The notes under the pieces: model-generated
Told to the model about the DNA's origin: nothing
The model's input: the letters and a program-made list of their open reading frames with translations, nothing else
Databases searched by the model: none
Program-made: the position numbers and the translations under genes
Shown: positions 5,885 to 31,142 of the stretch, piece by piece
Numbering within the stretch: the first letter of the stretch is position 1
Layout of the letters: each line of letters starts with the position of its first letter
DNA from: Wallemia ichthyophaga EXF-994
Taxonomy: Eukaryota; Fungi; Basidiomycota
Direction: 5' to 3'
Assembly: GCF_000400465.1 (NCBI RefSeq)
Contig: NW_008806281.1
Span: 30,001-62,000, forward strand
Length of the DNA: 32,000 bases

Positions 5885-5937
5885 AAGAGCCAACTTGAAT
5901 TGGTTTGATTGCCTTAACTAAACACAACGACCACATA

Positions 5938-7700
5938 ATGCAAACGCTTTCATCGTGGCTCAGAGTTGAGCAGTCAATCACAAAGTCAAAAAGAGAGCGA
6001 TGGCTTAGCAACGCGGATCTAGAGCCTGTGAAGTTAGAAAACAGGACGTGGACAAGTATGTCTTTTGTCAACTTCTGGGTCTCAGACAGCATCAACATAA
6101 ATACTCTGATGTTGTGTCAAGCAAACGTTGCGCTTGGACAGACTTGGTGGCAGAGTCTAATTGCAGTTTTCATCGGATATGCCATTACGGCAGTTTTCGT
6201 CATTGCTAGCTCCCGGCCTGGTGCTACTTTTCACTTAACTTTTCCTGTCCTCATTAGACAGTCTTGGGGTATCTTTGGAAGCGTATGGCCCATAATTAAC
6301 AGGGTCGTAATCGCCATTTTGTGGTTCGCAGTCCAGACATACATCGGCGGTAATTGCATACGCGTGATGCTCAGATGCTGGGATCCAAATTGGACGACCT
6401 CTGCGGGGCTCCAAAAGCAGCTAGACACAAATCTCAAGGGTTTTGATATGGTCTGCTTTATCATCTTCTGGTCGCTAATGCTCATACCGACTTACTTCCC
6501 GATTCAAAAAATCAAGCACTTTTTCACGTTCAAGGCTATTGTCGCGCCGCTTGGACTGATTATTTTCTTCGGATGGTCTCTCGGTAGAGCCACTGCAACT
6601 CCATCCCAGGAAGCCACACTTAAAAGTGTCCTCACCAGCCCATCGACGCTCACCTCCTCTGAACAAGGCTGGGAAATGGTCAAAGCGATAGTCAGAGCCA
6701 TCTCCAATGCCGTCACTCTCATCCTCAATATTTCAGACTTGGCTAGTCGAGCTCACGACAAAAAGAATGTAGTCTTTCCGCAGCTCCTCACAGTCCCCCT
6801 CGGATTTTTCATTACGAGTTTCTTCGGAGTAATCATAGCTTCGTGCTATCAAGCCGAGACGGGGATCAAAGAGTGGGATCCTATGGTAATTCTTGACAAC
6901 TTCATCAATCCAGACAGCGCTGCTGTGCGATTCGCGGTGTGGTTTATAGCTTTCTGTCTATGTGTTGCGCAGATGGGCACCAACCAAGCGGCTAATGTTA
7001 TAGCATGCGGATGCGACCTTACCGCATGTCTGCCTTCATACATTAACAACAGAAAAGGCGGCTATATCTGCGTGTTCCTCGGTCTATGTCTCGTGCCTTG
7101 GAGGCTTACAGACGGCGCAACGAGCTTCACCAACTACTTGTCAGGATACTGCGTTTTCCTCTCTGCCATTGCTGGGACTATGCTTTCCGATTACTTTGTC
7201 GTCAGACGCGGACGTGCCAACGTTGCAGACCTGTACAGGGTGGGTTTGACATGTGCTGTCCGGATAATGCTGACTGGAAACAGGCTGAGGGATGGTACAG
7301 CTACACATACGGTGTTAACCTTCGCGCTGTAGCAGCTTACCTCTGCGGTGTCTCGATAAATTTACCAGGCTTTATTGCGTCCACTCCAGGTAACGAAGAA
7401 ATTGTAGGTCGAAGCGCAACACGCATCTATAACCTGTCCTTCTTCACTGGATTTCTAGTCAGCTCGGTGATATACATAGCCATCAGCTACATCTTCCCAC
7501 CTACAGGAGCAGTACCGTTCAATGCACCATTTGAAGAGATTGACTTCAGTGGGTATACGCACGACACTGATTCTATATACGACTTGGAAGTAAATGGTCT
7601 AGGTGGTATGGCGGATGGTGGTATTGCTATTACTACAACCAAGACAGATTCTTCGTCCATCCGTTCCACTCGATCAACCAGGTCAATCGAAAAAGCATAA
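5938..7700 (+). CDS. NCS1 family nucleobase/allantoin permease (Fur4/Dal4-type), 572 aa
   Basis: join(5938..7239,7284..7700); 44-nt phase-0 intron. Motifs WLSNADLEPV..RTW, NFWVSDSININT, WFAVQTY, GTNxAAN, PWRL, DYFVVRRG, DLY..GWYSYTYGVNLRA; many hydrophobic segments. Substrate not assignable. Confidence 0.93.
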
Positions 7701-9948: not shown

Positions 9949-12900
9949 TTACTCGCTTGCACTGCCGTCGCTATCCTCAACATCCTCAACATCCAGCGTT
10001 CTCCTCTCAACATCAAAACCCTCCTTTCTCAAGCTCTCCTCCATTCCTTCCACCTTGGATGGCCCAGAAACGATCACAGCGCTGCTAGTGTCGGCGTTGA
10101 ACAGAGGAGCGATGTACCTTCTCAGCACATCCATCACGTCCTCCTTCTTTACTTCCCTGAATTTAGCCAGAAGCTGCTTATTATAATCCTGCGGTACCTG
10201 CTTGAAGATCTGGTTCACGAAGCTGGACAGAGCAGCAGAGCCGATAGTTGCTTCACGCGAAGTCATCGAGAAGCACAGTGAACTTATCGACGACTCAAGC
10301 GTTGTGTCCTCGAGTGTGATACTGCCGTCAACTAACCCCTTAACTACTTTTCCACCCTCTTCATACGCCCTGAACGCATTTGGTGCTTTGTACACAGTGA
10401 ACATCATCAATCCAGATTCTGGGTTTTGCGTTATGGATGCACCATACGCCAACCCTGTTCCTCTAATATAGCGCCAGAGGTATGACTCGAGTGCATTGAG
10501 CGTACCCAATGTGACCATTAATGCTGGAATGTCTGGATGATCATATCCTTCAACACCTTTGGCGGTGTGCACAGAGAATGACGATTCAATCGATGGTAGT
10601 GGGACAACGACTGCCTTCTTTGATGGGTTTTGACCAAGTGGCAACTTAAAGTCCTTCACCCAAGGCACGGATGCGAGTGGCTTGTTGTTCTCCTCTGGGA
10701 AGTACTTGGCCCATGGCTCCTGTGGACGCTCAAGACCCATTACATTTCCAGCAACACTGACGCGTATTCCGTTTGGCTGAACAACACACCTTCTAAATTC
10801 TTCAAGATCGCTAATGACACCCTTTGGATCATCTTCAAGTCTCTTTATGACAGTTGGGTTGAACTCTGACTGCTCGAGAACAGCATTGGCTTGTTGAAGA
10901 CTGTCAAACATGAGTGACGTCGACATTGCCCACACGACAGTATCACCTTCTCTCTTCTGCTCTGGCAGGCCTTGTTGGATCTTAGCAGCAGTTACCTTCA
11001 GTCTCTCGACATCGAATACGCTACCTGTAAGCAAGTCGCTCAACCACTCAATGGAAGCTTCGTAATATTGCTTTTCAACCTTGACAGACACTTGTAATAG
11101 CTCTGCAAATGTCCCTCTCGAACCAAAGTTAATGTCGTGTTCAAGAGTTGTCTCGTCAAGTGAGCGAACAACAGCCTCGTGCGAGAGCATTGTACCGTCG
11201 CGACGCTTGACTGGTAATGAGAAGAAGGTAGAGAGGAATAGCGACGCGTATGGTCTCAGATGCTTTGGAAGTTCGTTGGTTGAGAGGTAAATGCGAATTG
11301 ATGTAAATGATGATTTTCCATGGTCGTATTGGACAAAAATTGGTGGCTTGCTTGGATCAGACTCAATATGCTTACGGAGCTCATTGTTAGTAGGTGAGGT
11401 GATTGATGCCTTTTTGTACTCTTGACGAGCACTCTCTATTGGGATCCAGGAGATTGAGTCTGTCGATGGTACTTCGAATGACTTGATCATGTCTATAGCA
11501 TCTGTTAGCTAAATAATTGGAATTTAAAACCTCTTCACAAACCATCTGGAATTTCTTTATTGTTTTCCACTTGAGCATCATCAAATACCTTCTTGGCCTT
11601 CTTGATACCCTCTTCACCCAAAGACCTGCGCTGTTCATCCAAACGCTTCTGCTCATTCTCTTCAAGTGTCTTTGCGAGCGTGGCTGATGGCTTTCCTTTG
11701 ACATTGATGAATGGTGCATCGATAAAGCTCCTGCGAGTATGTTAAATTAAAAACTTCCTCGTTAGCACTTCAATACCCACTTCTTTAAAAGCTGTGCCCA
11801 ATCGTCAGACGTCCATTGACTTAAAATGTCACATCTCTTCATCTCAGCCAGCGAGTCTTGAAGATCCTTGCCTTCAGCGTCACCGTAGAGATGATCGGCG
11901 ATGAACATATAGGCGAATGCACTTGCAGCTTGTCTCTCAGCCATGTCAAGCAATTTGACGCGGTCTCTCTTGAGAACGAGAGCCATCCTGTCCATATCGA
12001 AACCTTCCTTTACAATGTTGTTAAGAATTTCCATAAGCTTGCCTTCAACGTTGTCAATTTCAGTAGTCGGTACAGAGGCCAAGTTGAAATGTATAGTGTC
12101 GTTGCAAACACGCTCGCGGTTGTATATGTTGATATCTGTGCAGTAAGGGGAAGCAATCTCAACAAGGTGCTTTTGCAATGGTGAAATAGCAGAGTCAGTT
12201 AAATAAGTGCCGAGAATATCGAGTGCCTTAGTGTGCAAGAAGTCGTTAGTCTTCCCACCGACCCACGACAACTCAACTTCACCAACACTTTCATCCTGCT
12301 CTGGGAATTCAGCGACTGCTCTTTCAGTCTTTTGCAACTTGAGGGGTTCTGCTGAAGGAGTTTCGACGAATGGTCTCTTCCAGCCACGTGGCTTGACACC
12401 AATCTCAATACCTCTCTCCTTAGCATCAGAGATGATACGTGGTTCAATTACATTTTGCATAACATCCAAAAGCTTATCGGTTGGAATATCCCCGGTAACC
12501 ACGAGTGAGAGATTATGAGGAGCGTAGTATTTTTTGTGGAAATCGCGCACTTTGTCTGCAGTAAGCACACGAAGAGCCTCCATTCTACCGCCAGTTTCAG
12601 AGCGATAAGCGCTGTTCTTTGGGTAGATGAGACCACGCTGCTTGTCCTCCATCAAATCGAATGGGGAGGTTGATCTACCCTGCATTTCAGAATAGACGAC
12701 GCCAGCATCGTCACCAGACTCGTTTATGTGGTGAATTTCGGTCGTGTAGCCGGCATCAGTGATAGTTGGTCTGAGCAAGTGGTCCATGTAGACGGGGAGC
12801 ATCCTCAAGAAGCCCTCGTATCCAGCGGTTTGGAGAGTGTAAACGGTTTGATCCGTATCAGTCCATGCATTTGTACCTGCTGCAAATGCTCTATTGGCGA

Positions 12901-13216
12901 GAGTGTCGAGAACGCCCTTATACGGGTAGAGTTTAGATCCAAGGAAGACGAGGTGCTCTAAGGTATGTGGACAGCCGCTGTCGTCGAATATTTCAGTGGG
13001 GACGACAAAGTTGGCCTCGCACATTGGGCTCTCGTGCTTGACTTGAGCTACGCTAAGCCCAGTGACTCTGCTCCTCCAGCGCTCAAGATGTACTGGTGCG
13101 TAATCGACACGCTGGCTAAATACTTTATCGTAATTTCCATAAGATTGTGACATTGTAGATGCTGTCCTTGTATTCGTAATTAAGCTTCTAAGTGGATTCC
13201 CTAATCGACGAAGCAT
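9949..13216 (-). CDS. M16 (insulinase/pitrilysin-fold) zinc metallopeptidase, 1055 aa
   Basis: complement(join(9949..11492,11543..11730,11781..13216)); two 50-nt introns. Inverted Zn motif HTLEH, NAWT, downstream GVVYSEMQG, C-terminal IRGTGLAYG. Confidence 0.92.
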
Positions 13217-14130: not shown

Positions 14131-15794
14131 ATGCTTCGCAGCTTACAGCATATCAGACGCTCGAGCAGGCTGGGCTTGCAACTGCGCTCATACGCCAGCA
14201 CTCCAGATCGCAGCACGCACTTTGCTAAGCTCACTCAAGACGATATCCCTTCACTCGCGTCCATCTTCTCTTCACCACACACTTCACTCCTCACAACGCT
14301 CGGCGATAACCCAACAGCGACAAAGGATGATCTCGAGCCATTTAACGTTGATTGGATGGGCAAATACAGAGGCCACTCGTCCATTATCGCGAAGCCAAAG
14401 ACGACGGAGGAAGTGAGCAAGCTTTTGCAGTGGTGCAATCAGCACAACGTTGCTGTAGTTCCACAAGGCGGAAATACTGGCTTGGTTGGTGCGTAAATGA
14501 AATTTCAATCCACACTCGCTCACTTCCCACCAGGTGGTTCAGTCCCTCTGCATGACGAGGTCGTCTTATCACTCTCCTCAATGAACAGCGTCAGGCACTT
14601 TGACTCTCTCTCCGGCTATGTCTCGGTCGATTCTGGCATCGTCCTCGAGAACTTGGATAACTTCCTCGCACAAAAAGGTCACGTCGTTCCACTCGATTTG
14701 GGTGCAAAAGGCTCTTGCCAAATTGGTGGAAACGTTGCCACAAATGCTGGTGGTCTGCGCATGTTGAGATACGGCAGCTTGCACGGAAACGTCCTCGGTC
14801 TCGAGGTTGTTCTCCCAGACGGCAGAATCATTAACGGTATGAAGGGCCTCAAGAAGGATAACACAGGTATTGACCTCAAGCAGCTCTTTATCGGCTCTGA
14901 AGGTGTCCTCGGTGTCGTCACCGGTGTCACTCTTGCCACTCCTGTCAGACCTTCTGCCACAAACGTCGCTGTCTTTGCTTTGCCCGATTACGAATCCGTC
15001 CAGACCGCTTTCTCCTCCGCTAGACGCGATCTTGGTGAGATCCTCTCCGCCTTCGAATTCTTCGATGCTGCCTCGTACAAACTCGTTCGCACCCACGGCC
15101 ATGCTGCCGAACGTAAGACTTTCGAAGACGGTGAAGATGCTCCATTTTTCTGCTTGGTGGAGACCTCTGGCTCAAACAAAGATCACGACGACGAGGTTAG
15201 TCTTGCAAATGATTTTTTCTACTCTAACCAATACACTTTAAGAAACTCGGAGCTTTCTTAGAACAACTTATGGAGTCTGGTATAGTCAATGACGGTGTGC
15301 TCGCACAAGACGAAACTCAGATCGCTCAATTGTGGACCTTGCGTGAAGGTATCCCTGAAGCTGCTGGAAAGGCTGGTCGTGTATATAAATACGACTTGAG
15401 TTTACCAGTCGAGAAAATGTACTCTCTAGTTCCTGAACTTCGCCAGAAACTCGCTGAGCAGGGTCTCCTTGCAGCTGAATCAGAAGGCGGTAATGGAAAT
15501 GGTCCAGTCAAGACAGTCTTTGGTTTCGGTCACTTAGGTGATGGAAATCTCCACATCAACATCGTTGCAGATGCGTACAGATCGGAAGTTGAAAAAGTCG
15601 TCGAGCCTTACATCTACGAATTGGTCGCTAATTACAACGGGTCAATCTCGGCTGAGCACGGCCTTGGATTGATGAAAGCACCTTATGTCTCATACAGTCA
15701 AGACGCTCCCTCACTCGATCTGATGCGCACACTCAAGAAGACACTCGATCCAAAAGGTATCCTCAACCCATACAAGTGTGTCACAGTCGAGTGA
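14131..15794 (+). CDS. DLD2: Mitochondrial D-2-hydroxyglutarate/D-lactate dehydrogenase (FAD-linked), 523 aa
   Basis: join(14131..14488,14534..15195,15243..15794); introns of 45 and 47 nt. Motifs PQGGNTGLVGGSVP, DLGAKGSCQIGGNVATNAGG, GDGNLHIN, SAEHGLG, LDPKGILNPYK; Arg-rich presequence MLRSLQHIRRSSRL. Confidence 0.95.
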
Positions 15795-15894: not shown

Positions 15895-18800
15895 TTACCA
15901 TTCAATCTCTTGCTTCAAGAATACATTCTCATTTGTGTTGGAAGTGGCGCCTTTGTCCCTGCTAGCTACTGTCTCCATTTGCGTCTTGTAATCTTGGAGC
16001 CTAGTATTTGCCTCGTTGCTCCGTCTCACCATTTCTATTCTAAGATCATCGTACTTGCGAACAAATTGCTTCCTCAACGCGTCGAATTGGGTAGATTGCG
16101 ATGTTGACATTTGCTCTATCTCAGCCTTGAGTGCGTTGTACTTGTCGTTACTTGCACTGTCAATGCCTGACATCTCGTGTGATTTTTTCTGTGGTTCACC
16201 TATTCTACTCAAGTGGGTCTTGAGATTTTCTATATCTTTCACTATTCCTTTTTCGGTCCATGCGTGTTGGTCAACAATCTGCTTGAGACCGGCAAACTTT
16301 GTTTCCAATTCTCTATTCGAGTTTCTCAGACTAGATTTTACAGTTTCTTCGAAATTCCGTATAAAGTCATTATGGCGGTGTAGGCGAACATGAATACTGT
16401 CGACAGCTTCTTTTTGCTTCCAGCTATCTTTTTTGGAATTATCTTCGACTTCTTTCAGCCTCGCTTCAAATCTTTGTTTATCTTTTACTTTTTCTGCCGT
16501 CTCGCGTGTCTCTCTAGCTTTATGAACCTCAGATGCGTCTTCTTTCTCCTTCTCTAACTTATTCTCAAAGCGCTTAACTTCTTGAAGGATGCCCTCTATA
16601 CCTTGCGTTGGCTGTGTATTCGAAGAATTTCTTGCCTGAGCTATACCTTCGTTGACCTTATTTTCGAACTCTACAAAACGAAGCGTAGATGATGTCAGGT
16701 AGCTGTCCACCTTGATAGACAGCAGCTGAGTTTCTTTCTTCGATTCCATAGTATCATGTCGATATTCTTCTATGCTCTTCTGTAGGTCCTTTTCTAAAGC
16801 TTTCTCCTTGCTGATTTTCTCCTCGTTGCTCTTGAGAGCCTCAATACTTTTAGTAAGCTCGGCGTAATGATTCTTTGCTAACAGTTGCTCTTCATTTACT
16901 CGCTGTAAAGCAGCCTCTCCCGAAGTAGAAATTTTTGACTCCAATTCTATCATTTTCGCTTCACGTTGAGCATCTTTTCGCTTGAGATCCAAGATGGTCT
17001 GTTGAAGCTCTTCATTGCGGGTAGTAGATTTCGTGAGCATGTTCATCATGTCAACTTGCGCACTGAAAAGTTTCATCATTTCAACTTGATTGACGCCAGG
17101 TGATTCCATCCTTTCTTTGCTCTGAGGCTGAGATGCTCTGTCATGCCCCTGATCAGTACCATTTTGCCCCGGCTTAGGAGGCTATGGAGCTGTTAGTTAA
17201 AAGAATAGATATGCGCACGCTCACCAAATCAAATCTTTCACTGTTATTGACGCCTTTATTCTTGTCGTCTGCTTCCTCCTTTGACGCCTGTTTCTTTATA
17301 TTGTCTCCCTCATTAGCGGATCGATCGATAGTGACAGAGGAAGCTTCATGGCGAGGTTTGTTAGAAAGAACTTCTGCGCGCATTTGCTTTCCATTAGCAT
17401 CATTGCCATGCTGTCGCTTAAGGCGCTTGATGTGATCGTCTCTCTCTCTACCTACATTCTCTTCAGCGACCTTTGCTTTCAGATCGTCTGTCTGCTTCTT
17501 TGCTAACTCCGATTCCATAGCTTTAGCCTTCCTGGCGGCTTCGGCTTTCTTGGTCTCGATGACTTGCTGAGCTGCTTCCTGTCTCTCGATTTCCTCCTGC
17601 TTTTTCATTTCTTCATCTCTCCTAGCCTGTCGTACTTCGTCCTTCTGCTTGACTTGCTGTTCAAATCGGAAGTCTTCTTGTCTCTTGGCTTCTTCCTTTC
17701 TCTTAGCCTCCTCTTTCCGTTTAGCTTCTTCTTTTCTCTCAGCTGCTACAGTCTCTTCCTTTCTCTTAAGTGCTACCGCTTCCTCATTTACTTTAGCTGC
17801 TGCTTCTTGTCTGCTGGTGAATTCTTGTTGTCTACTTTCTACCTCTTGATTTAACTGATCCAGAGCTGTCTGATGTTTTGCTTTACCTGACTTCTTGTCG
17901 GCACTATGTTTTTCATTTCGTATCGCTATTTTACTATTAGTGTCTTCAACTTTCCTGGCAATGCTGCGTCTTGCTTCATCATCCTCTCCCTCCGTAACAG
18001 CACTTGGTCGCTTCTTGGAAAATGAAGGAAGGGGTTGAGATTTTCGACGATCGTGTTGAGGGGTGTGTTTTGTATTTTCAGGTGCAGCAACTGAGGAATG
18101 CTTCAGAGGCTCGCTTCTACGCGTATGTTGTTTCTTCTTATTGGCAGGTAGTGAGCTCTTATCGCCATTAGATTCCTCAGACTCAGAGTCCTCGATCCTC
18201 GATCGTTTGAAAGGTTTCTGTGAATGAGCTCGACTTGAAGAGTGGTGGTGACTTGGTCGCGTGGTATGCTCGACTATTTGTACATCGTCTGAATCTGAAC
18301 CAGAGCTTTGAAGGAGGTTGGCTGTGTTTTGCTTGTCAGAATATCCACTTTAAATATGCACGCATACACTTACATTCCTTGCCTCGTGTGAGATTGTTAG
18401 TTACCTCCTCCTCGGAATTGCTTTCAGCAGCACCCTGGATTTGCGCAGGCTGCGATATTCTCTTTGCATTCTCCACATACTGCTGAATCATTTTGCTCTT
18501 TGATGTTTTACCCTTGTTTGAGCTGGAGCTATTGGAGGGTGATTTGGACTTTTTGGTAGATTTAGGGGGCTTCTTATCGATTTGGGAAGGCTTATTGGAA
18601 TTGGGTGTGGATGTGGAACCGGTTCCAGGCTCAGCCAAGTCGTCCTCGTCTGAACTTGAGTCAAGGACTATCGATTGACGTCTTTTAAGTGTATGCATAG
18701 GCGTAGGTGATGCTTTTGTACCAAATCCCGCTATTACATTTGATTGCTTTTGCTTTCCTTGCTTCTCGCTTGATTTGGAAACATTCTGATTGCTATCACC

Positions 18801-19723: not shown

Positions 19724-20882
19724 TTACAATTCAAAGAGAGCGTTAGTATTCATGTGTGCGGCATTAGCGACTATATGCAAAGGTAATTCCTTCGCACAAG
19801 CTATGAGATGAGCGATGAGGGGGAGATAACCAGGTTCGTTGCGACCCTTAACGGGTGCTTCCTCACTCCACTTTTCCTTCTTGAGCGGAGGGTTAAGCTT
19901 GAAGAAGTCGTCAAGAGTATCAATGTGCTCGTGCATAGCGTGAGTAGATGAGACACCGCACCACGGAGCATCAGTTTCGATCATGAGTCTGTCGAGTGGA
20001 ACAGCCTTGGCTACTTGGATACTTTCTTCTGTCTTAAGACTACATCCATTCAGACCAATATATAGACCCATTTTGACCTGAGGTGGGTTGAAGTGTGAGT
20101 AGCGAGTTGCGCGTGTATATCTCAGCTACTCACTAATTCGTGCATCTCTTGAACAGTCCCAGTAAAAGAATGCACACAGCCTCGCGGTAGCTTGATTCCA
20201 CAGGTAGATTTGATGACCTTGACCAAATCACTGTGGCAGTTACGGGAGTGAAGGAACATAGGCATGTCCAGTCTCTGAGCTAGTTGTAGCTGTGCGGTGA
20301 AAGCCTCTATCTGTTTAGGTTTATCGCTACAGCGAGTGCGAGCGCGTGTAAGTGAGACATGAAAGAGGGAGCAAAAAAAAACAACACACGCGAAATGCAA
20401 CCTGTCCCAATCAAGACCACACTCACCCACAGCCACTACCCTCTTCCCTCTGACGGCGCCTCTGTATCGGTTATCGGAGATGAACTGCTCGAGTTGGGTG
20501 ATGTATCCGTCGACGAATTCATTTGAGCGGGTAGGATGTAGACCAGCTGTGGAGAAGTACGCGAAGTCACTGAACTGAGTAGCGAGGTTATGTGCTTCGA
20601 CGCTTTCTTCTAGATTACCGCCGGTGAGCATGGCGCCATCGACACCAACCCTGTGAGCTCTCTCCACCACGGCTTTTAGATCGTCCGGATGAGATTGCTT
20701 GGATCTATAAACACCGCGGAACATGCTGTCCGCGAGATTGAGGCCGATGTCTTGTGTGTCACGGTCGTCAGCAGTGAGATATCACCGACGGGAGCATCAA
20801 ACACACCGATGAACCTCAGTTCCGATAGAGAATCTAATTGTAATTGCCTTATTTGGCGCTTGAGTGCTTCCATCTTGTCCAT
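19724..20882 (-). CDS. tatD: TatD-family (TATDN1-type) nuclease, 327 aa
   Basis: complement(join(19724..20077,20134..20326,20390..20750,20807..20882)); introns of 56, 63 and 56 nt. Motifs FIDIGLNL, GLHPT, GECGLD, FLHSR, CVHSFTG, IETDAPW, GRNEP. Confidence 0.93.
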
Positions 20883-20924
20883 TGTGCACTCGAGTTGAGA
20901 GTCAACGACCAAGAGCCCCGAGAA

Positions 20925-21917
20925 ATGTCATGGTTCAAACGATCTGCACAGAATTATATCCCTCAAGCAGGTGAAGACCGTATGCGGAACGAGCTGCTTG
21001 GTGGTGACGGCACGCAAGCGCAAGCGCAAGCACTAGCTGATGAGGAAGACGCTGCAAGTATGCGCCCGCCCTCGTACACAACAGTAGATAAGGGTGGCGA
21101 TGCAGCTGACGACGCAGCGCGTAGTGAGTTGTTCAGCGGCGCACCGCCACGCACAGCCCAGCGCAATCAGGGCGGTGGAATCACCAACTCTGCCCAAGGT
21201 CTCGATGAGGAGCAACACACAGCCAATGAAGATGAGGACGTCGAGGCTATTAAGCAGCAGACTCGATTCGTTAAGGAGGATAGTAGAGAGAGTACGAGGA
21301 ATGCACTACGTATCGCACGCGAGACTGAGGATAATGCTGCTAATACCATGATGAAATTGGGTGACCAATCAGAGCGTGTCGCTGACACTGAACGTCATCT
21401 CGATCTCGCTAAAGCACACGCTAATCGCGCAGAAGATAAGGGGAAAGAACTCAAGAAACTAAACCGGTCCATCTTCAGGCCTGTCATGTCGTGGCAGACG
21501 GATAGGAGGAGACGCGAAGTTCAGCAGCGCATTGAAGATAGACACGAAACTGAGCGTGAGGAGAGGGAAAAAGCACACGTGGATGTCTTTACATCGAGGA
21601 AGAGGGTTGATAACGTATTGGATCCTCAGAAAAGAGGATTCGGTGGTTTTGGAAGGAAAAAGCCTGAGCAGTCGTCGACGGTGGAGAGATCCAAGTACCA
21701 GTTCGAAGCGACAGCGAGTGATGACGAATTGGAAGACGAAATTGATGGAAATCTCAACGATATCAATCAGGCAGTCGGCAATCTCAAGCGATTCGCTATA
21801 GCCTCCGGCGAAGAAGTCGGTACACAGAACGATAGGCTGGACGACATCCACAACAAGGCTGGTAAACTGGATGACAAGATATTCAGAAACACTCAGAAAC
21901 TCAAGAAGATCAATTGA
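20925..21917 (+). CDS. SEC9: Plasma-membrane Qbc t-SNARE Sec9 (SNAP-25 family), 330 aa, intronless
   Basis: Two SNARE motifs with zero-layer Gln (LGDQSERV; VGTQNDRL), LNRSIF, EDEIDGNLNDI. Likely start MSWFKR at 20925. Confidence 0.92.
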   Translation: MSWFKRSAQNYIPQAGEDRMRNELLGGDGTQAQAQALADEEDAASMRPPSYTTVDKGGDAADDAARSELFSGAPPRTAQRNQGGGITNSAQGLDEEQHTANEDEDVEAIKQQTRFVKEDSRESTRNALRIARETEDNAANTMMKLGDQSERVADTERHLDLAKAHANRAEDKGKELKKLNRSIFRPVMSWQTDRRRREVQQRIEDRHETEREEREKAHVDVFTSRKRVDNVLDPQKRGFGGFGRKKPEQSSTVERSKYQFEATASDDELEDEIDGNLNDINQAVGNLKRFAIASGEEVGTQNDRLDDIHNKAGKLDDKIFRNTQKLKKIN

Positions 21918-24595: not shown

Positions 24596-25878
24596 ATGCC
24601 AATCCCAGTCGAGAGCCTAACGCACTCCAGCGATGAATATATCCACATCCCGCTATCCTCTCTGAAAAAGGCTACAATTAGATCTTCCAGGTGTGTCTGG
24701 TATCTGGAGATAGCCTTGTATATCTGCTAACACCTCCCAGTGATTTCCGCAGCGATGTCGTTACCGTGCCCACCCCTGAAGTACTCGAAGCTATGGTAAA
24801 CGCTACTTTCCACGATGAAATCTACGAAGGCGATGCGACTATTGCTGCACTTGAATCTAAAATGGCTAAAATGGCTGGAAAGGAGGCTGCAATGTGGGTT
24901 GTATCTGGCACGCAGGTGAGTTGAGTGATTTCCCATATAGTTCCAGCCATCTAACGCAGTTTGATCCAGGCTAATCAAATATCCCTACGTACCCATCTCC
25001 ATCAGCCTCCTCACTCCATCCTCTGCGACCATAGGGCTCACATCTACTGCTGGGAATCTGGCGCAATCTCCGTTCTTTCACAAGCCCAATGTACTCCTGT
25101 TATACCACGCAACAGGCGTCATCTTACAGTACACGACATAGCTCATTCTATGATACCAGATGGGAATATCCACTTTGCACCTACAAAAGTTATATCTCTC
25201 GAAAATACGTTGTCTGGTACAATTCTCCCGCTTGCTGAGGCACAGAGAATTAGGCAATACGCACTCAATCACCCTAACAAACCAAAGATGCACTTAGACG
25301 GCGCCAGGCTGTTCGATGCCGTCGTCGCTGAAGGTGTTAGCCTGACTGATTACTGCGATAACTTTGACAGCGTGAGCTTATGTATACAGAAAGGTACTGG
25401 TGCGCCTGTAGGATCCATGATTGTTGGCGACAAGCCTTTCATCGATAGGGCCAAATGGTACAGGAAAATGTTCGGTGGTGGTGCGAGACAACCGGGTATG
25501 CTGGCTGCTGCAGGGATTGCAGCTCTCGACCAAGCTCTACCACTCATAGCACTCACGCAACACAAGGCAAAATTAGTATCAGAATATCTCACAATGGAAC
25601 TGGGGCTAAAATTATCAGTACCCACCGAAACCAATATGATTGTGTTGGATTTGGAAGAGGCAGGTATCCCGCCGCGCGTTTTTAGACACCGCCTCTTCCA
25701 GTTCGGAGTTAGAGTGTTCGATCAGGGTAGACTCGTGTTCCACAACCAAATATCAGACCAGGGCGTGTCGGCGCTGTGTCAGGGCGTGAAGTCACTCGTG
25801 ATTGATGCCAGAATACCCAATAAGTTGGATCAACTGGATCAGGAGATAGAGTATACTGAATCACTGTCTCAAAACTAA
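24596..25878 (+). CDS. GLY1: Low-specificity L-threonine aldolase family PLP enzyme, 392 aa
   Basis: join(24596..24690,24741..24915,24970..25878); introns of 50 and 54 nt. Motifs DFRSD, SGTQAN, HIYCWESG, SLENT, HLDGARL, KGxGAPVGS, RKMFGGG. Confidence 0.9.
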
Positions 25879-26046
25879 TAGGATAAGCGATTTCTTTGTT
25901 TTTCATAGATTATTAATGTTTAACGATTTTATGTTATGGAGACACATAGTGTATGTGTGCCTTGTTTGTACGTCGTGTATGCTGCTTGTGTCTCGTGCGT
26001 GCCGCGTGTATGCCGTGGCTTCACCTCTTACAATATCACCACCACC

Positions 26047-29000
26047 ATGCTCGATGATTTCGTACAGCACCCGAACGAAGCGAGCGGAGTAAAATCCCAG
26101 AAGATGGTAGATGATAATGGCTGGCAATCAGATCCAAACGTGCAGGCGAGTGCGTCATCTCAGCGTGTTCCCTGGCTAACAGCACAGCAGTTGCTGGAGA
26201 TAGAGCACCAAGCCCCGCAAGAAGCTGGAGATGGAATGTTTGAGCTTACGCAGGTTCAATTCACTCCGCCGTCGCACATTGTTCATCTCACCGTTATCAA
26301 CAACTTGATATACATTCTCCTCGAATCGGCGCAGATACTGCGAATAAATCTGCTGCAGGCGGATGTGATAGACAGCATACAGGTGCAAGTACAGGCTATC
26401 TCTCCCAGTGCACGCATCTACGCAGACGCTTCACTCAGGCACTTGCTCCTGGTAGACACCACCGTGCACTACATCCAACCAGACAACAAACGCTCGAAGC
26501 AGCTCCCCAAGATGTCCAAACTCACGCCCAGCTGTGTTCATTTCGTCAACTCGAGGCAGTCGCTCTCCTCGGCTCTTGTTCTCGCAGGCACAGCCGAAGG
26601 CTCAGTGTATCAGGCAGTGATCAACCCAAATCCCTCAGATATTTTCAGAAAGAATAGCGAAGAGCGCCACCTGAAGCAACTTTTCTCGTTCAATGAACCC
26701 ATCGTCGAAATCAATTCACATGTCTACCCAGACCGCAAGAGTGCTCTCGCGATAGTAGTCACCAGATCGCGACTGTACACGTTCATAGGACCATTCGGTA
26801 AGATAGACAATGATGGTGGTGTTGGCCTCGAGACGGTTTTCTCACAGTCGCCCTTCTCCATAAAGATCACAGACGGTGCAGATGCAGGTGCGCATACACA
26901 TACACTTGAGTCGCATGCATCTTTCTACTACAACACCACCAATCGCAGCCCACACACGCACAGCCCGCGCGCTCTGTCGTGGCTATGCGACAGATCGCTC
27001 TACAACGCGTGGCTGGACACGGAGACGCGTAATGCGGAGAAAGTTTGCGCAGGTGCGACGCTCACAGAGGTAGAGGGCGGAGTGCGAGGGGTGCTTCTCA
27101 CCGCATACCACTGTCTATGTCTGTACAATGGCGCGATCAAGGCATACCGCATTCTCGACGGGGCCGTTGTGTGGGATGAGCAAATACCCAAGGGTATTAG
27201 GGGGATGGCGCGCGACAATTTCCACCACACACTCTGGCTTTACTCTGACGACGCCATTTACGAACTTACCATCACTGATGAAGACCGCGATATCTGGAAA
27301 GTCCATCTGTGTAAACGTGACTTTGAAAAGGCGTTGCGAAGCAGCAAGAGCGCCGTCGATCGTGATGTCATTCTCGGAAAGGAGGCTGATCTTTACTTTG
27401 CTCAAGGCAAGTTTATCCAATCGGCTCAGATTTACGCCCAGTCTACGTCTAAACCATTCGAGAGCGTTGTGCTGCAGTTTGTGGAGGTCGACGAACGCGA
27501 CGCTCTCAGATACTACCTAAGCGCTAGATTGGAACGCAGTAAGAAAACTGAATTGACTCAGCGAATGATGCTCGCTACGTGGTTGCTGGAAATATACCTC
27601 GATAAACTCAATCAGCTCGACGATCTTATTAGCGAAAATACCAACGAGGATGCAGAAAATGCCAGAATGGAATTAGAGATGATGATGGATGATGTCAAGG
27701 TGTTTATCAAAACGTATAAGCAGAATTTGGATAAGAATGTGGTATATAAAAGTCTCAAACTTCACGCTAGACTTGATTTGCTGCTTGAGTTTGCGACGTG
27801 CATCGACGATTACAAAGTCATACTCGAACAACACTCGTATCATTGCAGATGGCGAGATATACTGCATGTGCTGGCAGGACAGGTGGGTATTTATCAGCAC
27901 ATGCATTACCACTAAACAAGTCCACATAAGTCTGATCTCGAGCTTCACTACAAGTACGCACCAAGACTGCTGCGCGAGGCTACGCAGCATACCGTCGAGA
28001 TATGGAAGCGGGAGCCCAGACTAGATTTGAAGCGGCTGATACCATCTCTAATACAATGTGAGAAACTTTCCAAGGAGAGCAGAATGCATGCAACGAAGTA
28101 CATGGAATGGAAACTTGATTATGACAGCGTGGACGAACCTATAGCGTACAACGTGTACATTACACTACTCTCCAAAGACGAAGAAAGGGAAGAAGAGCTA
28201 GTAGAGTATCTCAAACGAACGACGACAGCTAGATTTGATATGGATTTCGCTCTCCGTCTGTTTCATAAACGTGGACTTAAGAGGGCTACAATACAGATGT
28301 ATGCGCTAATGGAGCTGTTCGACAGCAGCGTAGATCTTGCTATCGAGAGCGGAGATCTAGATTTAGCTACGGTGTATGCGGATAAACCGGCAGACGATCC
28401 AATCTTGCGCAAGAAATTATGGCTCAGGATAGCAAAGGTGATAGTGCAGGATCGGAGGGATATAAAGAGGTGTGTGTTTGAGAGTTTATACTATTTAACG
28501 AAACTAAATCACTCAGTGCGATGCAGTTCCTCGAAGGATCAGATGTGCTGCAGTTGGAAGACATACTTCCATTCTTCCCTTCGTTCGAAGTAGTGGATGA
28601 CTTTAAGGAGGAGATATGCAACGCATTGGATAGGTATTCATCGCGAATTGAGCAATTGTCGACGGAGATGGACGAGACAGGACATACATCACAACGCATC
28701 AAGGGTGATATGGATAAACTCAAGGATAGAAAAGTGGTCGTTGCTGCAGATGAGAAGTGCGCCATATCAGGGAAAGCGATAAGAGGGAGTGAATTTTACG
28801 TGTTCCCAACGCAGCGCGTGTATAGGGTGGATGCGCTGATCGAGAAGGTAGCGACATACGCAAAGCCAGAGACGCTACGGAGGATCGTAGAGTTGCAGGC
28901 GGAGATAGAGGGAGTGAAAAACATGCATCAAGCGAAACCAACCAAGGCAGGATTTAGTGGAGAGAGGCTTAGGGAGTTGGTGGTGCCTTCGACAATCAAT

Positions 29001-29159
29001 CAGATATTTAACACGAACAACAAGACATCTAAGAGGAAGGATGTGGTTAAGCTGCGGAAAGAGCTCGATGAGATACTGTCCAAGTCAGATCCGTTGGTGG
29101 AAGAGAGCGTGGTGAACGTAGACAAGCCATTCAGAAGGAATGAAAAGTGGGAGATATGA
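26047..29159 (+). CDS. VPS18: HOPS/CORVET core subunit Vps18 (Pep3), ~1005 aa, with degenerate C-terminal RING
   Basis: join(26047..27882,27931..28469,28517..29159); introns of 48 and 47 nt. Motifs WLYSDDAIYEL..EDRDIWK, AQIYAQST..FESVVLQF, QRMMLATWLLEIYLDKLN, LQLEDILPFFP.F.VVDDFKEEIC, FYVFP, DKPF. Confidence 0.93.
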
Positions 29160-29276
29160 AATGACGAATGAATAGCAAGAAAAAATAAAAATAAAACATT
29201 TTTATAATTTTTGACGTTTACCTGTGAAATATAAGTGTTGTGTTGTTGATCTCGTACCCTAAACGTGAAAGTGAAA

Positions 29277-31142
29277 ATGGATGAAGAATTATTCCCTGTG
29301 GCATTGCTGCTTGATGAATTGAAGTGGGTAGATAATCACTTTAACCAATTAGAAAGCTTAGAGCAATTACAGATCTGACGACGTTACATTGCGCCTAAAT
29401 GCTATTCACAGAATATCAACAATCGCTTTGGCACTTGGCCCAGAAAGAACGCGTGATGAGCTCATTCCTTTCTTGCAAGATTCCCTCGACGACGAAGATG
29501 AGGTTCTCCTCGCTTTAGCCGAGGAATTGGGATCTTTCACTGAGTACGTAGGTGGAAAGGAATACGCGCATGTAACGCTCTCACCGCTGGAGTCATTGGC
29601 TGGTATGGAAGAGACGCTTGTCAGGGATAAGGTGGGTTACTCTGGCGGTTTATACGCCAGCAGCTCACCCACACTCAAAAACAGGCTTCAGAATCCATAA
29701 ACAAAATCGCTACAGATTTGTCTAGCGAGCAGGTGGAGACTGACTACCTCCCACTTCTCCAACGACTTACCAATGGTGACTGGTTCACTCCACGTACCTC
29801 TGCTTGCGCTCTCTTCGCTTCAGTCTACCAAACCGCAAATGAAAGTACGCGCAATGAGCTCCGTGGACTTTTTAAGAAACTCACAAACGACGATACTCCA
29901 ATGGTTAGAAGATCCGCTGCTAAGAATCTTGCTGGTTTCATAAACGTCCTTGAGCCGAATGAAATTTTCTCTGAATTCATCGACGTTTATAAGAAATTAG
30001 CCATTGATGATCAAGACAGCGTTAGATTGCTCACCGTAGAAGCATTGATCACAATCATGAAGAAGCTAGACAAATCTCAAGTTAACTCTGAGCTCTTGCC
30101 TTGTGTTCGAGCTGCATGCAACGACGCTTCTTGGAGAGTTAGATTCATGGTTGGCCAGAAGTTTGTTGAAATGGCTGAATGCGTCAATCAAGATATCATT
30201 CGTGATGAATTGGTACAGGCTTTCGTTAACTTGTTAAAGGATAATGAGGCAGAAGTTAGAACTGCGTCCGCTTCTCAAATACCTGGCGTCGCTAAATTTG
30301 TTGATCAAGAAATAGTTTTGGCAAAGATATTGCCCGTTGTGAGAGATATTGCAGGTGATCAATCACAACATGTTAGAGCAGCCGTTGCGAATGAATTATC
30401 AGGATTAGCACCATTATTGGGTAAAGATGAAACAGTTGAAAACGTTTTACCAATTTTCCTTCAACTTTTGAAAGATGAATTCCCAGATGTTAGATTAAAC
30501 ATCATTTCAAGACTTGATAAGGTGAATGATGTGATTGGTATTGATTACCTTTCAAAGGCATTACTACCCGCAATCTTTGAGTTAGCAGAAGATAAACAAT
30601 GGAGAGTTAGACAAGCAATAATTGAGTATATACCACTTTTAGCAAAACAATTAGGCGTAGAATTCTTCAATGAGCAATTGGGTAACCTTTGCATGTCATG
30701 GTTGGGTGATACAGTATTCTCAATAAGAGATGCAGCGACTATAAACTTAAAAAATTTGACAGAAGTGTTTGGATCAGATTGGGCATCACAAACGGTAGTA
30801 CCAAAGGTGGTAGCAATGGGAAATCACTCCAACTACTTATACAGAATGACGACAGTATTTGCGATAACGACAATGTCACCTGCATTACAACCAAAAGTGA
30901 TTCAAGAGCAAATATTAACGATAATATTATCATTAACGACAGATGCAATTCCAAATGTTCGATTCAACGTTGCAAAATGTTTAGAAGTATTGAGTGGAAA
31001 CCTACAACAAACACCAGAAGGACAAGAAGTAATCCAAAGAGAAATTTTACCTGCGGTGGACAAGCTGAAAGAGGATCCAGATGCAGATGTGAGGTACTTC
31101 TCAAATAAAGCAATTGAGTCAATTACAGGTGTTAAAAACTAA
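29277..31142 (+). CDS. TPD3: Protein phosphatase 2A scaffold (A) subunit, HEAT repeats, 587 aa
   Basis: join(29277..29323,29373..29631,29685..31142); introns of 49 and 53 nt. Motifs [84 protein letters not shown]. Confidence 0.97.

Follow-up and report, generated by a model that had tools for sequence, protein, structure and literature searches.

Can a RING finger go on serving as the assembly hub of a tethering complex once it can no longer bind zinc? This question is raised by the Vps18 gene (Vps18/Pep3, a class C core subunit shared by the tethering complexes HOPS and CORVET) carried by a 32,000-nucleotide stretch of the basidiomycete Wallemia ichthyophaga EXF-994 (contig NW_008806281.1, positions 30,001 to 62,000 of the forward strand), which we call the window and in whose numbering all positions are given. 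The RING finger at the end of Vps18 is regarded as a key hub in the assembly of HOPS and CORVET. An E3 ubiquitin ligase activity has been attributed to it, and RING mutations or deletions in HOPS subunits cause human disease and, in yeast, disrupt vacuolar sorting. An earlier note on this DNA, made from its letters, claimed that the finger had lost seven of its eight zinc ligands while keeping its scaffold. We found that this is indeed the case. Our favoured reading, to which we give a probability of roughly 0.65, is that the sequence and the predicted structure describe a zinc-free, U-box-like RING derivative, which would still act as the hub on which HOPS and CORVET assemble.

Seven of the eight zinc ligands are replaced

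The gene and the landmarks of its C-terminal part are the following, L1 to L8 being the eight zinc-ligand positions of the RING and (+) the plus strand:

26047-29159 (+): Vps18/Pep3 gene, 1005 amino acids
26047-27882, 27931-28469 and 28517-29159 (+): Vps18 exons (stop included), giving a spliced open reading frame (ORF) of 1005 codons
27883-27930 (+): intron 1, 48 nucleotides, GT-AG; its excision recovers the frame and the conserved LELHYKYAP block
28470-28516 (+): intron 2, 47 nucleotides, GT-AG; it interrupts a Ser codon
28518-28742 (+): EDILPFFP motif and long C-terminal helix before the RING (helix in the AlphaFold2, AF2, model)
28758-28850 (+): RING remnant, first half, C-A-I-S ... F-Y-V-F-P-T-Q-R-V-Y-R-V-D-A-L and helix; L1 to L6 are C,S,T,R,R,A
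28758-28760 (+): L1, Cys (TGC)
28767-28769 (+): L2, Ser
28809-28811 (+): L3, Thr
28815-28817 (+): L4, Arg
28824-28826 (+): L5, Arg
28833-28835 (+): L6, Ala
28851-29087 (+): L6-L7 insertion, 84 residues, helical hairpin and disordered linker
29088-29132 (+): RING remnant, second half, D-P-L-V-EESVVNVDKPF
29088-29090 (+): L7, Asp
29097-29099 (+): L8, Val (GTG)

On the evidence of its sequence, it is not in doubt that the gene product is a Vps18 orthologue, that is, a derived Vps18 rather than a non-member, despite the change in its RING. The beta-propeller is recognised by the Pfam profile PF05131 (Pep3_Vps18; E=1.1e-50, 173 bits, 352 of the 353 profile positions). Searches with phmmer against the PDB match the Vps18 chain 8dit_C (E=3e-131, query 68-926) and yeast Pep3 in the HOPS cryo-electron microscopy structure (7zu0_C, E=9e-48, query 346-903), and this collinear likeness to solved Vps18 takes in the alpha-solenoid and the C-terminal helix; the Pfam Clathrin/CHCR repeat gave no match in the protein at E<=0.1. 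The nearest named relative is the W. mellicola hypothetical protein E3Q00_03899 (62% identity, full coverage). W. mellicola belongs to Basidiomycota, Wallemiomycotina. The gene assignment and the basidiomycete placement made by the earlier note both hold. A strain with 98% identity is also present in Logan assemblies.

Three independent alignments agree on the ligand columns, beyond the FYVFP and KPF anchors on which the earlier note had relied. The first, phmmer against the PDB chains 8dit_C and 7zu0_C, covers ligands 1-6 and pairs the window segment 'ekcaisgkairgsefyvfptqrvyrvdal' with 'ekcyacglpllsrqffvfpcqhafhsdcl' of 8dit_C, and likewise with yeast Pep3. The second is a MAFFT alignment of 7 homologues (among them Phenoliferia, Puccinia, Coemansia, W. 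mellicola and an alga-like sequence), in which the ligand spacing of the RING is conserved in the window protein. The third, a MAFFT alignment of 113 homologues, places the eight columns in the same way, with D/V opposite the last C-x2-C. The window thus has C,S / T,R / R,A / D,V at the positions at which zinc-type relatives have C,C / C,H / H,C / C,C: the C3H2C3 ligand set of RING-H2 for a two-zinc cross-brace is absent, and the L1 Cys is its only survivor. The peptides quoted in the earlier note were exact, and so was its span 28758-29099, which opens with the first base of the L1 codon and closes with the last base of the L8 codon.

None of these alignments puts another Cys or His at the ligand sites; the earlier note had named such a placement as fatal to its claim. 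Indeed, Cys and His occur once each in the 127-residue remnant, and this His is Asn in the 98%-identical strain; judged by this composition, an alternative Cys/His zinc site in the remnant is impossible, because a single Cys and a single non-conserved His are all that it offers. No Pfam RING family recognises the C-terminal 213 amino acids at E<=10; in intact relatives, zf-RING_5, zf-RING_Vps41 and others are matched weakly, below the curated cut-offs. The Pro-Leu between L7 and L8 and the closing D-K-P-F are kept.

Compared with canonical Vps18/Pep3/Deep orange (7ZU0 chain C, 8DIT chain C, human VPS18), the architecture of the window protein is the same, i.e., a Pep3_Vps18 beta-propeller, an alpha-solenoid, a long C-terminal helix and a RING with a long L6-L7 spacer, and the EDILPFFP, FYVFP and DKPF motifs are present in both. 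The extended spacer is a known feature of Vps18 (PMC5651818). What differs in the window protein is the replacement of the seven ligands, the loop after L2, which is R-G-S in place of the consensus L-[ST]-R, and the residue before L5, which is Tyr in place of Phe.

The spacer also contains the block LRELVVPSTINQIF (window 28950-28995, columns 189-213 of the seven-homologue alignment), which has the counterpart LRKLVLPDALLGIM in Phenoliferia and a similar one in Puccinia. It is common to four aligned basidiomycete-type sequences, i.e., the window protein and three basidiomycete relatives (Phenoliferia and two Puccinia), and the Coemansia match is poor.

Such a change could in principle come from a sequencing or assembly error, from a pseudogene, or from a redundant copy backed by a second, RING-intact Vps18, and the genome scope of our analysis, which is the 32-kb window, is the point that speaks for this explanation. 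We nevertheless hold it to be very improbable. The spliced ORF has 0 internal stop codons across its 1005 codons, its two introns are canonical, and the peptide at the exon-2/3 junction, DIKSAMQFLEG, is the same in the annotated W. mellicola protein; the scaffold, spacing and reading frame are thus intact, as the earlier note had stated. Moreover, the ligand-loss motif recurs in four independent Logan contigs of the 98% strain, in the W. mellicola cluster (13 members) and in several metagenome assemblies. As for a second Vps18, nothing else returned by an exhaustive HMMER search of 1.84 billion representative proteins exceeds 55% identity except two short fragments: P0009 (75% identity), whose RING remnant is identical to that of the W. 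mellicola sequence P0002, and P0102 (90% identity), which is an exon-2 piece.

Age of the loss and constraint in the Wallemia clade

How old is the loss, and has the finger been left to drift since? The ligand columns of W. mellicola are C,S,T,R,R,A,D,V, identical to those of the window. A third sequence, P0010 (961 amino acids, found in metagenome assemblies only), has C,S,T,R,R,S,D,I, at 48% identity to each of the other two, and overall identity among these three ligand-less Wallemia-type sequences is about 48-64%. In a neighbour-joining tree of full-length proteins the three are monophyletic, and their clade is nested in a group whose named members are the basidiomycetes Coniophora (a cluster), Puccinia and Phenoliferia, and in which 8/8 ligands are kept throughout. 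Since the three are monophyletic inside a ligand-intact group, the simplest account that the sequences allow is a single ancient loss in their common ancestor. Read in this way, the replacement residues have been maintained since that ancestral loss. P0010 may be a non-Wallemia member of Wallemiomycetes, which would place the loss deeper.

P0010 also has long Asn/Ser-rich low-complexity runs in its L6-L7 insertion (...NSNSSNNGNN...SNNSNSNNK...) and an Asp/Asn-rich C-terminal tail.

The nonsynonymous divergence (dN) of the window from W. mellicola falls from 0.33 in exon 1 to 0.23 in exon 2 and 0.18 in the C-terminal exon. We give no numerical ratio of nonsynonymous to synonymous divergence (omega), because synonymous sites between these two are saturated (proportion of synonymous differences, pS, 0.89-1.0) and the 98% strain, with 3 substitutions in exon 3, is too similar; relative dN and identity ratios were used in its place. 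Thus, of the dN/dS check suggested by the earlier note, the lower dN of the C-terminal exon stands and omega is not meaningful. As a control for relaxed constraint, we compared the identity of the RING core, from which the ligand columns had been removed, with that of the remaining protein: the three ligand-less pairs give ratios of 1.10-1.34, and 11 zinc-type Vps18 pairs of similar divergence give 0.82-1.35. These comparisons indicate that the finger has not drifted after ligand loss and that constraint is not relaxed. The continued purifying selection claimed by the earlier note is borne out by the replacement residues common to the three lineages, the low dN of exon 3 and a core conservation equal to that of zinc-type relatives.

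Ligand loss elsewhere in eukaryotes and its pattern

Is this loss peculiar to the Wallemia lineage, as the earlier note implied? An exhaustive HMMER search of the 1.84 billion representative proteins with the C-terminal 292 amino acids gave 828 matches at E<=1e-10, and the best 150 of these 828 were examined. The first six ligand columns are intact in 122 of the 153 aligned rows. Among the 114 sequences of the alignment that covers all eight columns, 92 are fully intact, zinc site 1 (L1, L2, L5, L6) is kept in 96 and zinc site 2 (L3, L4, L7, L8) in 101, and the L1 Cys is present in 114/114. Ligands are lost in 19/114, the three Wallemia-type sequences included, a fraction which is not a population estimate, the sample being biased to ligand-poor sequences since the query is itself ligand-poor. 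Three further deviants have the six N-terminal ligands intact and a last pair that is unresolved or non-Cys; these look like truncated or mis-called C-termini. Beyond fungi, the following states were found:

Andalucia godoyi (jakobid): C,S/C,H/L,V/C,C
Aphanomyces euteiches (oomycete): C,T/C,H/H,A/C,C
Cluster containing a Picozoa protein: C,T/C,K/Y,A/C,C (phmmer alignment, outside the 114-sequence set)
Euglena longa: C,C/S,R/H,C (first six columns, phmmer only; uncertain, and counted intact in the 114-sequence MAFFT alignment)

Furthermore, an environmental clade (P0040, P0042, P0044 and relatives) has lost 7/8 ligands, as in Wallemia, and in the neighbour-joining tree, which is weak evidence on this point, it adjoins the oomycete Aphanomyces and not fungi. 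From the aligned sequences, the recurrence of Vps18 ligand loss across distant eukaryotes is clear, and the loss is not a peculiarity of the Wallemia lineage. The earlier note would have given way if such loss were widespread and already described, and this is half the case, since the loss recurs in very different eukaryotes. Zinc-finger loss in the HOPS family is a published theme, and no description of Vps18 ligand loss was found in the searched literature; literature searches for Wallemia with Vps18, and likewise for 8DIT, found nothing.

One further sequence, P0020 (C,S/C,H/R,A/C,C), was considered as an intermediate on the way to the Wallemia state and rejected, as the tree does not place it in fungi and it has kept the Gly after L8, which is missing from the aligned basidiomycetes. 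Its likeness to the Wallemia state is convergent, not ancestor-like.

This recurrence bears directly on the idea that the loss is a lineage-specific adaptation, i.e., zinc economy or remodelled tethering in the xerophilic/halophilic Wallemia, with co-degenerated partner RINGs (Vps41, Vps8, Vps11). The loss is old in the Wallemia clade and fixed there, which would suit such an adaptation. We nevertheless consider it quite improbable: the similar losses in a jakobid, an oomycete, a picozoan-containing cluster, Euglena and environmental eukaryotes occur in quite different ecologies, and the literature searched held no link between Wallemia and zinc limitation. The HxxEH zinc motif of a neighbouring M16 peptidase in the window is intact, which is one data point against a general loss of zinc sites from this genome. 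The zinc economy and remodelled tethering offered by the earlier note are thus not borne out. The Vps41 partner was sought in Wallemia with a human VPS41 sequence, a query validated as VPS41-like by its match to yeast Vps41 (7zu0_F, E=1e-56); the best 120 of its 376 matches were vertebrate VPS41 throughout.

The losses also follow a pattern. The commonest deviant state is the loss of site 1 alone, and in 7 of the ten sequences without Cys/His at L3/L4, two or more of L2, L5 and L6 are gone as well; the other site-2-less sequences include P0026, which lost only L5 of site 1, and the alga-like P0008, which keeps the four site-1 ligands. In the 114-sequence alignment, L2 is replaced by Ser or Thr in all 15 sequences that lost it, L4 by Arg in 7/10, L5 by Leu or Arg and L6 mostly by Ala. 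Neighbouring positions change as well (the Fisher tests made on them ignore shared ancestry):

Gly after L2: ligand-poor 15/19, intact 18/92
Gly six residues after L2: ligand-poor 12/19, intact 2/92
Phe before L5 changed to Tyr: site-2-less 8/10, intact 6/92
Gly after L8 changed to Asp/Glu: site-2-less 6/10, intact 0/92

At least five groups, with identities of 27-44% between them in the region, can be told apart among the ten site-2-less sequences; identity is 47-71% within the environmental clade and 52-77% within the Wallemia clade. The recurrence of the neighbouring changes suggests a repeatable alternative stabilisation rather than decay, and we read them, from the alignment, as convergence on a metal-free way of holding the same fold.

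In P0026, a non-fungal environmental Vps18 fragment, 'FYVFPDQRVYRVDCL' is nearly the same string as 'FYVFPTQRVYRVDAL' of Wallemia, at only 38% identity to the Wallemia protein in the region. Given this distance, the shared string appears as a striking convergent motif.

It would be tempting to go one step further and to propose that the Vps18 RING-H2 has been converted to a zinc-free U-box-like module several independent times in eukaryotes, via a repeatable path. Site 1 (L2, L5, L6) would be lost first and site 2 next, the first Cys being always kept, and the same compensation would recur, i.e., Ser/Thr-Gly at L2 and Arg at L4, with Tyr preceding L5 and an acidic residue following L8. We advance this tentatively, at somewhat less than even odds. 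A parallel exists in alpha-COP (Kaur and Subramanian 2015), which has a protocoatomer-type beta-propeller, alpha-solenoid and C-terminal RING and a loss pattern the same as across Vps18: many lineages have substitutions at the zinc ligands of its RING-like domain, with a preferential loss of the first-metal site and a highly conserved first Cys (PMC4678705). Unlike Vps18, alpha-COP belongs to COPI, and the zinc-free state is common in alpha-COP and a minority in Vps18. As the ordered loss in Vps18 mirrors that of alpha-COP, the analogy suggests a general route of metal loss for protocoatomer-type RING fingers.

Fold, hub function and surroundings of the gene

Would the remnant still fold, and still dock its partners? 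With the C-terminal 213 amino acids as input and the 114-sequence alignment, AF2 gave a mean predicted local distance difference test score (pLDDT) of 82.9. In fragment numbering, the long pre-RING helix spans residues 23-69 (pLDDT 87-98), the RING remnant forms a beta-hairpin (93-95 and 101-103) followed by a helix (104-114), the L6-L7 insertion is a helical hairpin (117-138 and 170-187) and D-P-L-V-EES forms a short helix (192-197); pLDDT is 93-97 across residues 61-130. In the PDB, Foldseek gave one significant match, to yeast Vps18 in HOPS (7zu0_C, E=7e-4, TM 0.49, 132 columns). The next matches, non-significant, are mostly RING-H2 domains (RNF165, RNF24, Arkadia, APC11, RBX1), and the U-boxes of CHIP and LubX appear, also non-significant, at ranks 21 and 38. 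AF2 and Foldseek are consistent with a retained RING-like fold, and the zinc-independent RING fold that the earlier note had proposed is the best-supported reading.

What this fold would do can be gathered from work on other species. In yeast HOPS, the C-terminal helix and the RING of Vps18 lock Vps41 in, the helix forming a coiled coil with Vps41, and the pre-RING loop touches Vps33 (PMC9592082); the RING is a structural hub (PMC9592082; PMC5651818). The RINGs of VPS18 and VPS41 heterodimerise in human cells (PMC5651818), and those of Vps18 and Vps8 appear to pair in yeast (PMC3078060). From the retained and constrained scaffold, we conclude that the Wallemia module probably still docks. In a single-copy-type Vps18, the C-terminal RING-H2 would have been converted to a zinc-free RING-like module, in which the polar or charged Ser, Thr, Arg, Arg and Asp would take over the metal sites, together with the Phe-to-Tyr change beside L5. 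The module would most likely still fold and, with the preceding long helix, would most likely form the dock for Vps41 in HOPS, for Vps8 in CORVET and for the Vps16/Vps33 SNARE module.

The U-box offers a precedent: it was reportedly described by Aravind and Koonin in 2000 as a zinc-less RING-fold E3 module, stabilised by salt bridges and hydrogen bonds. Like it, the window protein has a RING scaffold with metal ligands turned mostly into polar or charged residues (S, T, R, R, D), and keeps a hydrophobic residue after L1 and the Pro after L7. Unlike it, the window protein has no Pfam U-box match and arose independently, inside an orthologous RING-H2. In canonical RING E3s, the contacts with the E2 include an aliphatic residue after L1 and a Pro after L7. 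Both are kept in the Wallemia remnant, where they may equally serve subunit contacts.

Several points weigh against the zinc-free hub. With an 8-sequence alignment, AF2 reached a mean pLDDT of 56, and that model was not used for fold comparison; the better model is not independent proof, because the alignment that drives it is mostly of zinc binders. The Pfam U-box gave no match in the C-terminal 213 amino acids at E<=10, and an Arg-Asp/Tyr stabilising network in the remnant is a conjecture. Moreover, a ligand loss of such size could well alter partner binding, because, among the four Vps-C RING deletions in yeast, that of Vps18 does the most damage (PMC3078060).

A different conclusion can be drawn from the same structural evidence, namely that the RING fold is lost, that the segment is an extension of the helical/coiled-coil interface and that the finger's function is dispensable in this lineage, as is that of the Vps41 finger in yeast. 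The low confidence obtained with the shallow alignment fits with this explanation, and the last 13 residues and the L7/L8 stretch are, even with the deep alignment, the least confident of the ordered parts. Some lineages are known to do without the zinc fingers of HOPS subunits: yeast Vps41 has lost its finger and kept the complex (PMC5651818), and the same is said of 'many yeast HOPS components' (PMC11513930). These cases (yeast Vps41, HPS5 and yeast HOPS subunits) are, like the window Vps18, lineage-specific losses of a C-terminal zinc finger in a HOPS-family subunit. In the Vps41/HPS5-type cases, however, the motif is absent or unrecognisable, whereas the Wallemia Vps18, which is the core hub subunit, retains its scaffold under constraint. 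Indeed, FYVFP, the Leu after L6, the P-L between L7 and L8 and I-D-K-P-F are all retained, the scaffold being as conserved as in zinc-binding relatives, and the residues that took the place of the ligands have been conserved between lineages of 48% identity, which would be unexpected if these positions were free. We therefore regard the loss of the fold as unlikely, and favour a zinc-free RING-like module that would still serve as the hub.

An alternative start, the ATG at 25936, was rejected: the W. mellicola protein and the Logan gene calls begin MLD(D/E)F, at 26047. This in-frame ATG would add to Vps18, through positions 25936-26046, a 37-residue Cys-rich extension (METHSVCVPCLYVVYAACVSCVPRVCRGF...). 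As the W. mellicola protein and the Logan calls start at 26047, this segment is probably 5' leader, and it could mislead automatic annotation. The window and W. mellicola agree in gene order: Vps18 stands between a threonine aldolase-like gene, upstream, and a HEAT-repeat gene, downstream. The former is also upstream in the 98% strain (loci L001 in W. mellicola and L002 in that strain); the latter, a PP2A A-subunit-like gene directly 3' of Vps18, has at least one intron near its 5' end and the same locus position in W. mellicola. The other features of the window are the following, (-) being the minus strand:

5905-7332 (+): ORF of the purine/cytosine/uracil/thiamine/allantoin permease family (Transp_cyt_pur, 1.5e-92)
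11762-13216 (-): M16-family peptidase ORF (Peptidase_M16 and M16_C), inverted zinc motif HxxEH kept as 'PHTLEH'
14497-15794 (+): FAD-linked oxidase gene, split
24596-25878 (+): beta-eliminating lyase / threonine aldolase-like gene, intron-split, directly upstream of Vps18
29268-31142 (+): PP2A scaffold (A/PR65) subunit-like HEAT-repeat gene (PPP2R1A-like_HEAT, 4e-42)

The permease ORF and the FAD-linked oxidase gene look like ordinary housekeeping content, and the long ORFs 1163-2563, 9949-11490, 15895-17109 and 20844-21917 gave no Pfam match at 1e-5.

What would a Vps18 of this kind teach us? A natural Vps18 that is incapable of binding zinc and constrained in its scaffold separates the RING as a structural dock from the RING as a zinc-dependent ligase, and such proteins are a ready-made test of which property tethering complexes need. 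If the repeated conversion proposed above is true, the HOPS/CORVET hub could do without metal binding, and probably without E3 ligase activity too, the role of the invariant first Cys would not depend on zinc, and Wallemia would be a culturable organism showing the end state. The effect on our understanding of Wallemia biology is probably small; the broader point is an ordered, convergent loss of the Vps18 zinc ligands in which the first Cys is invariant.

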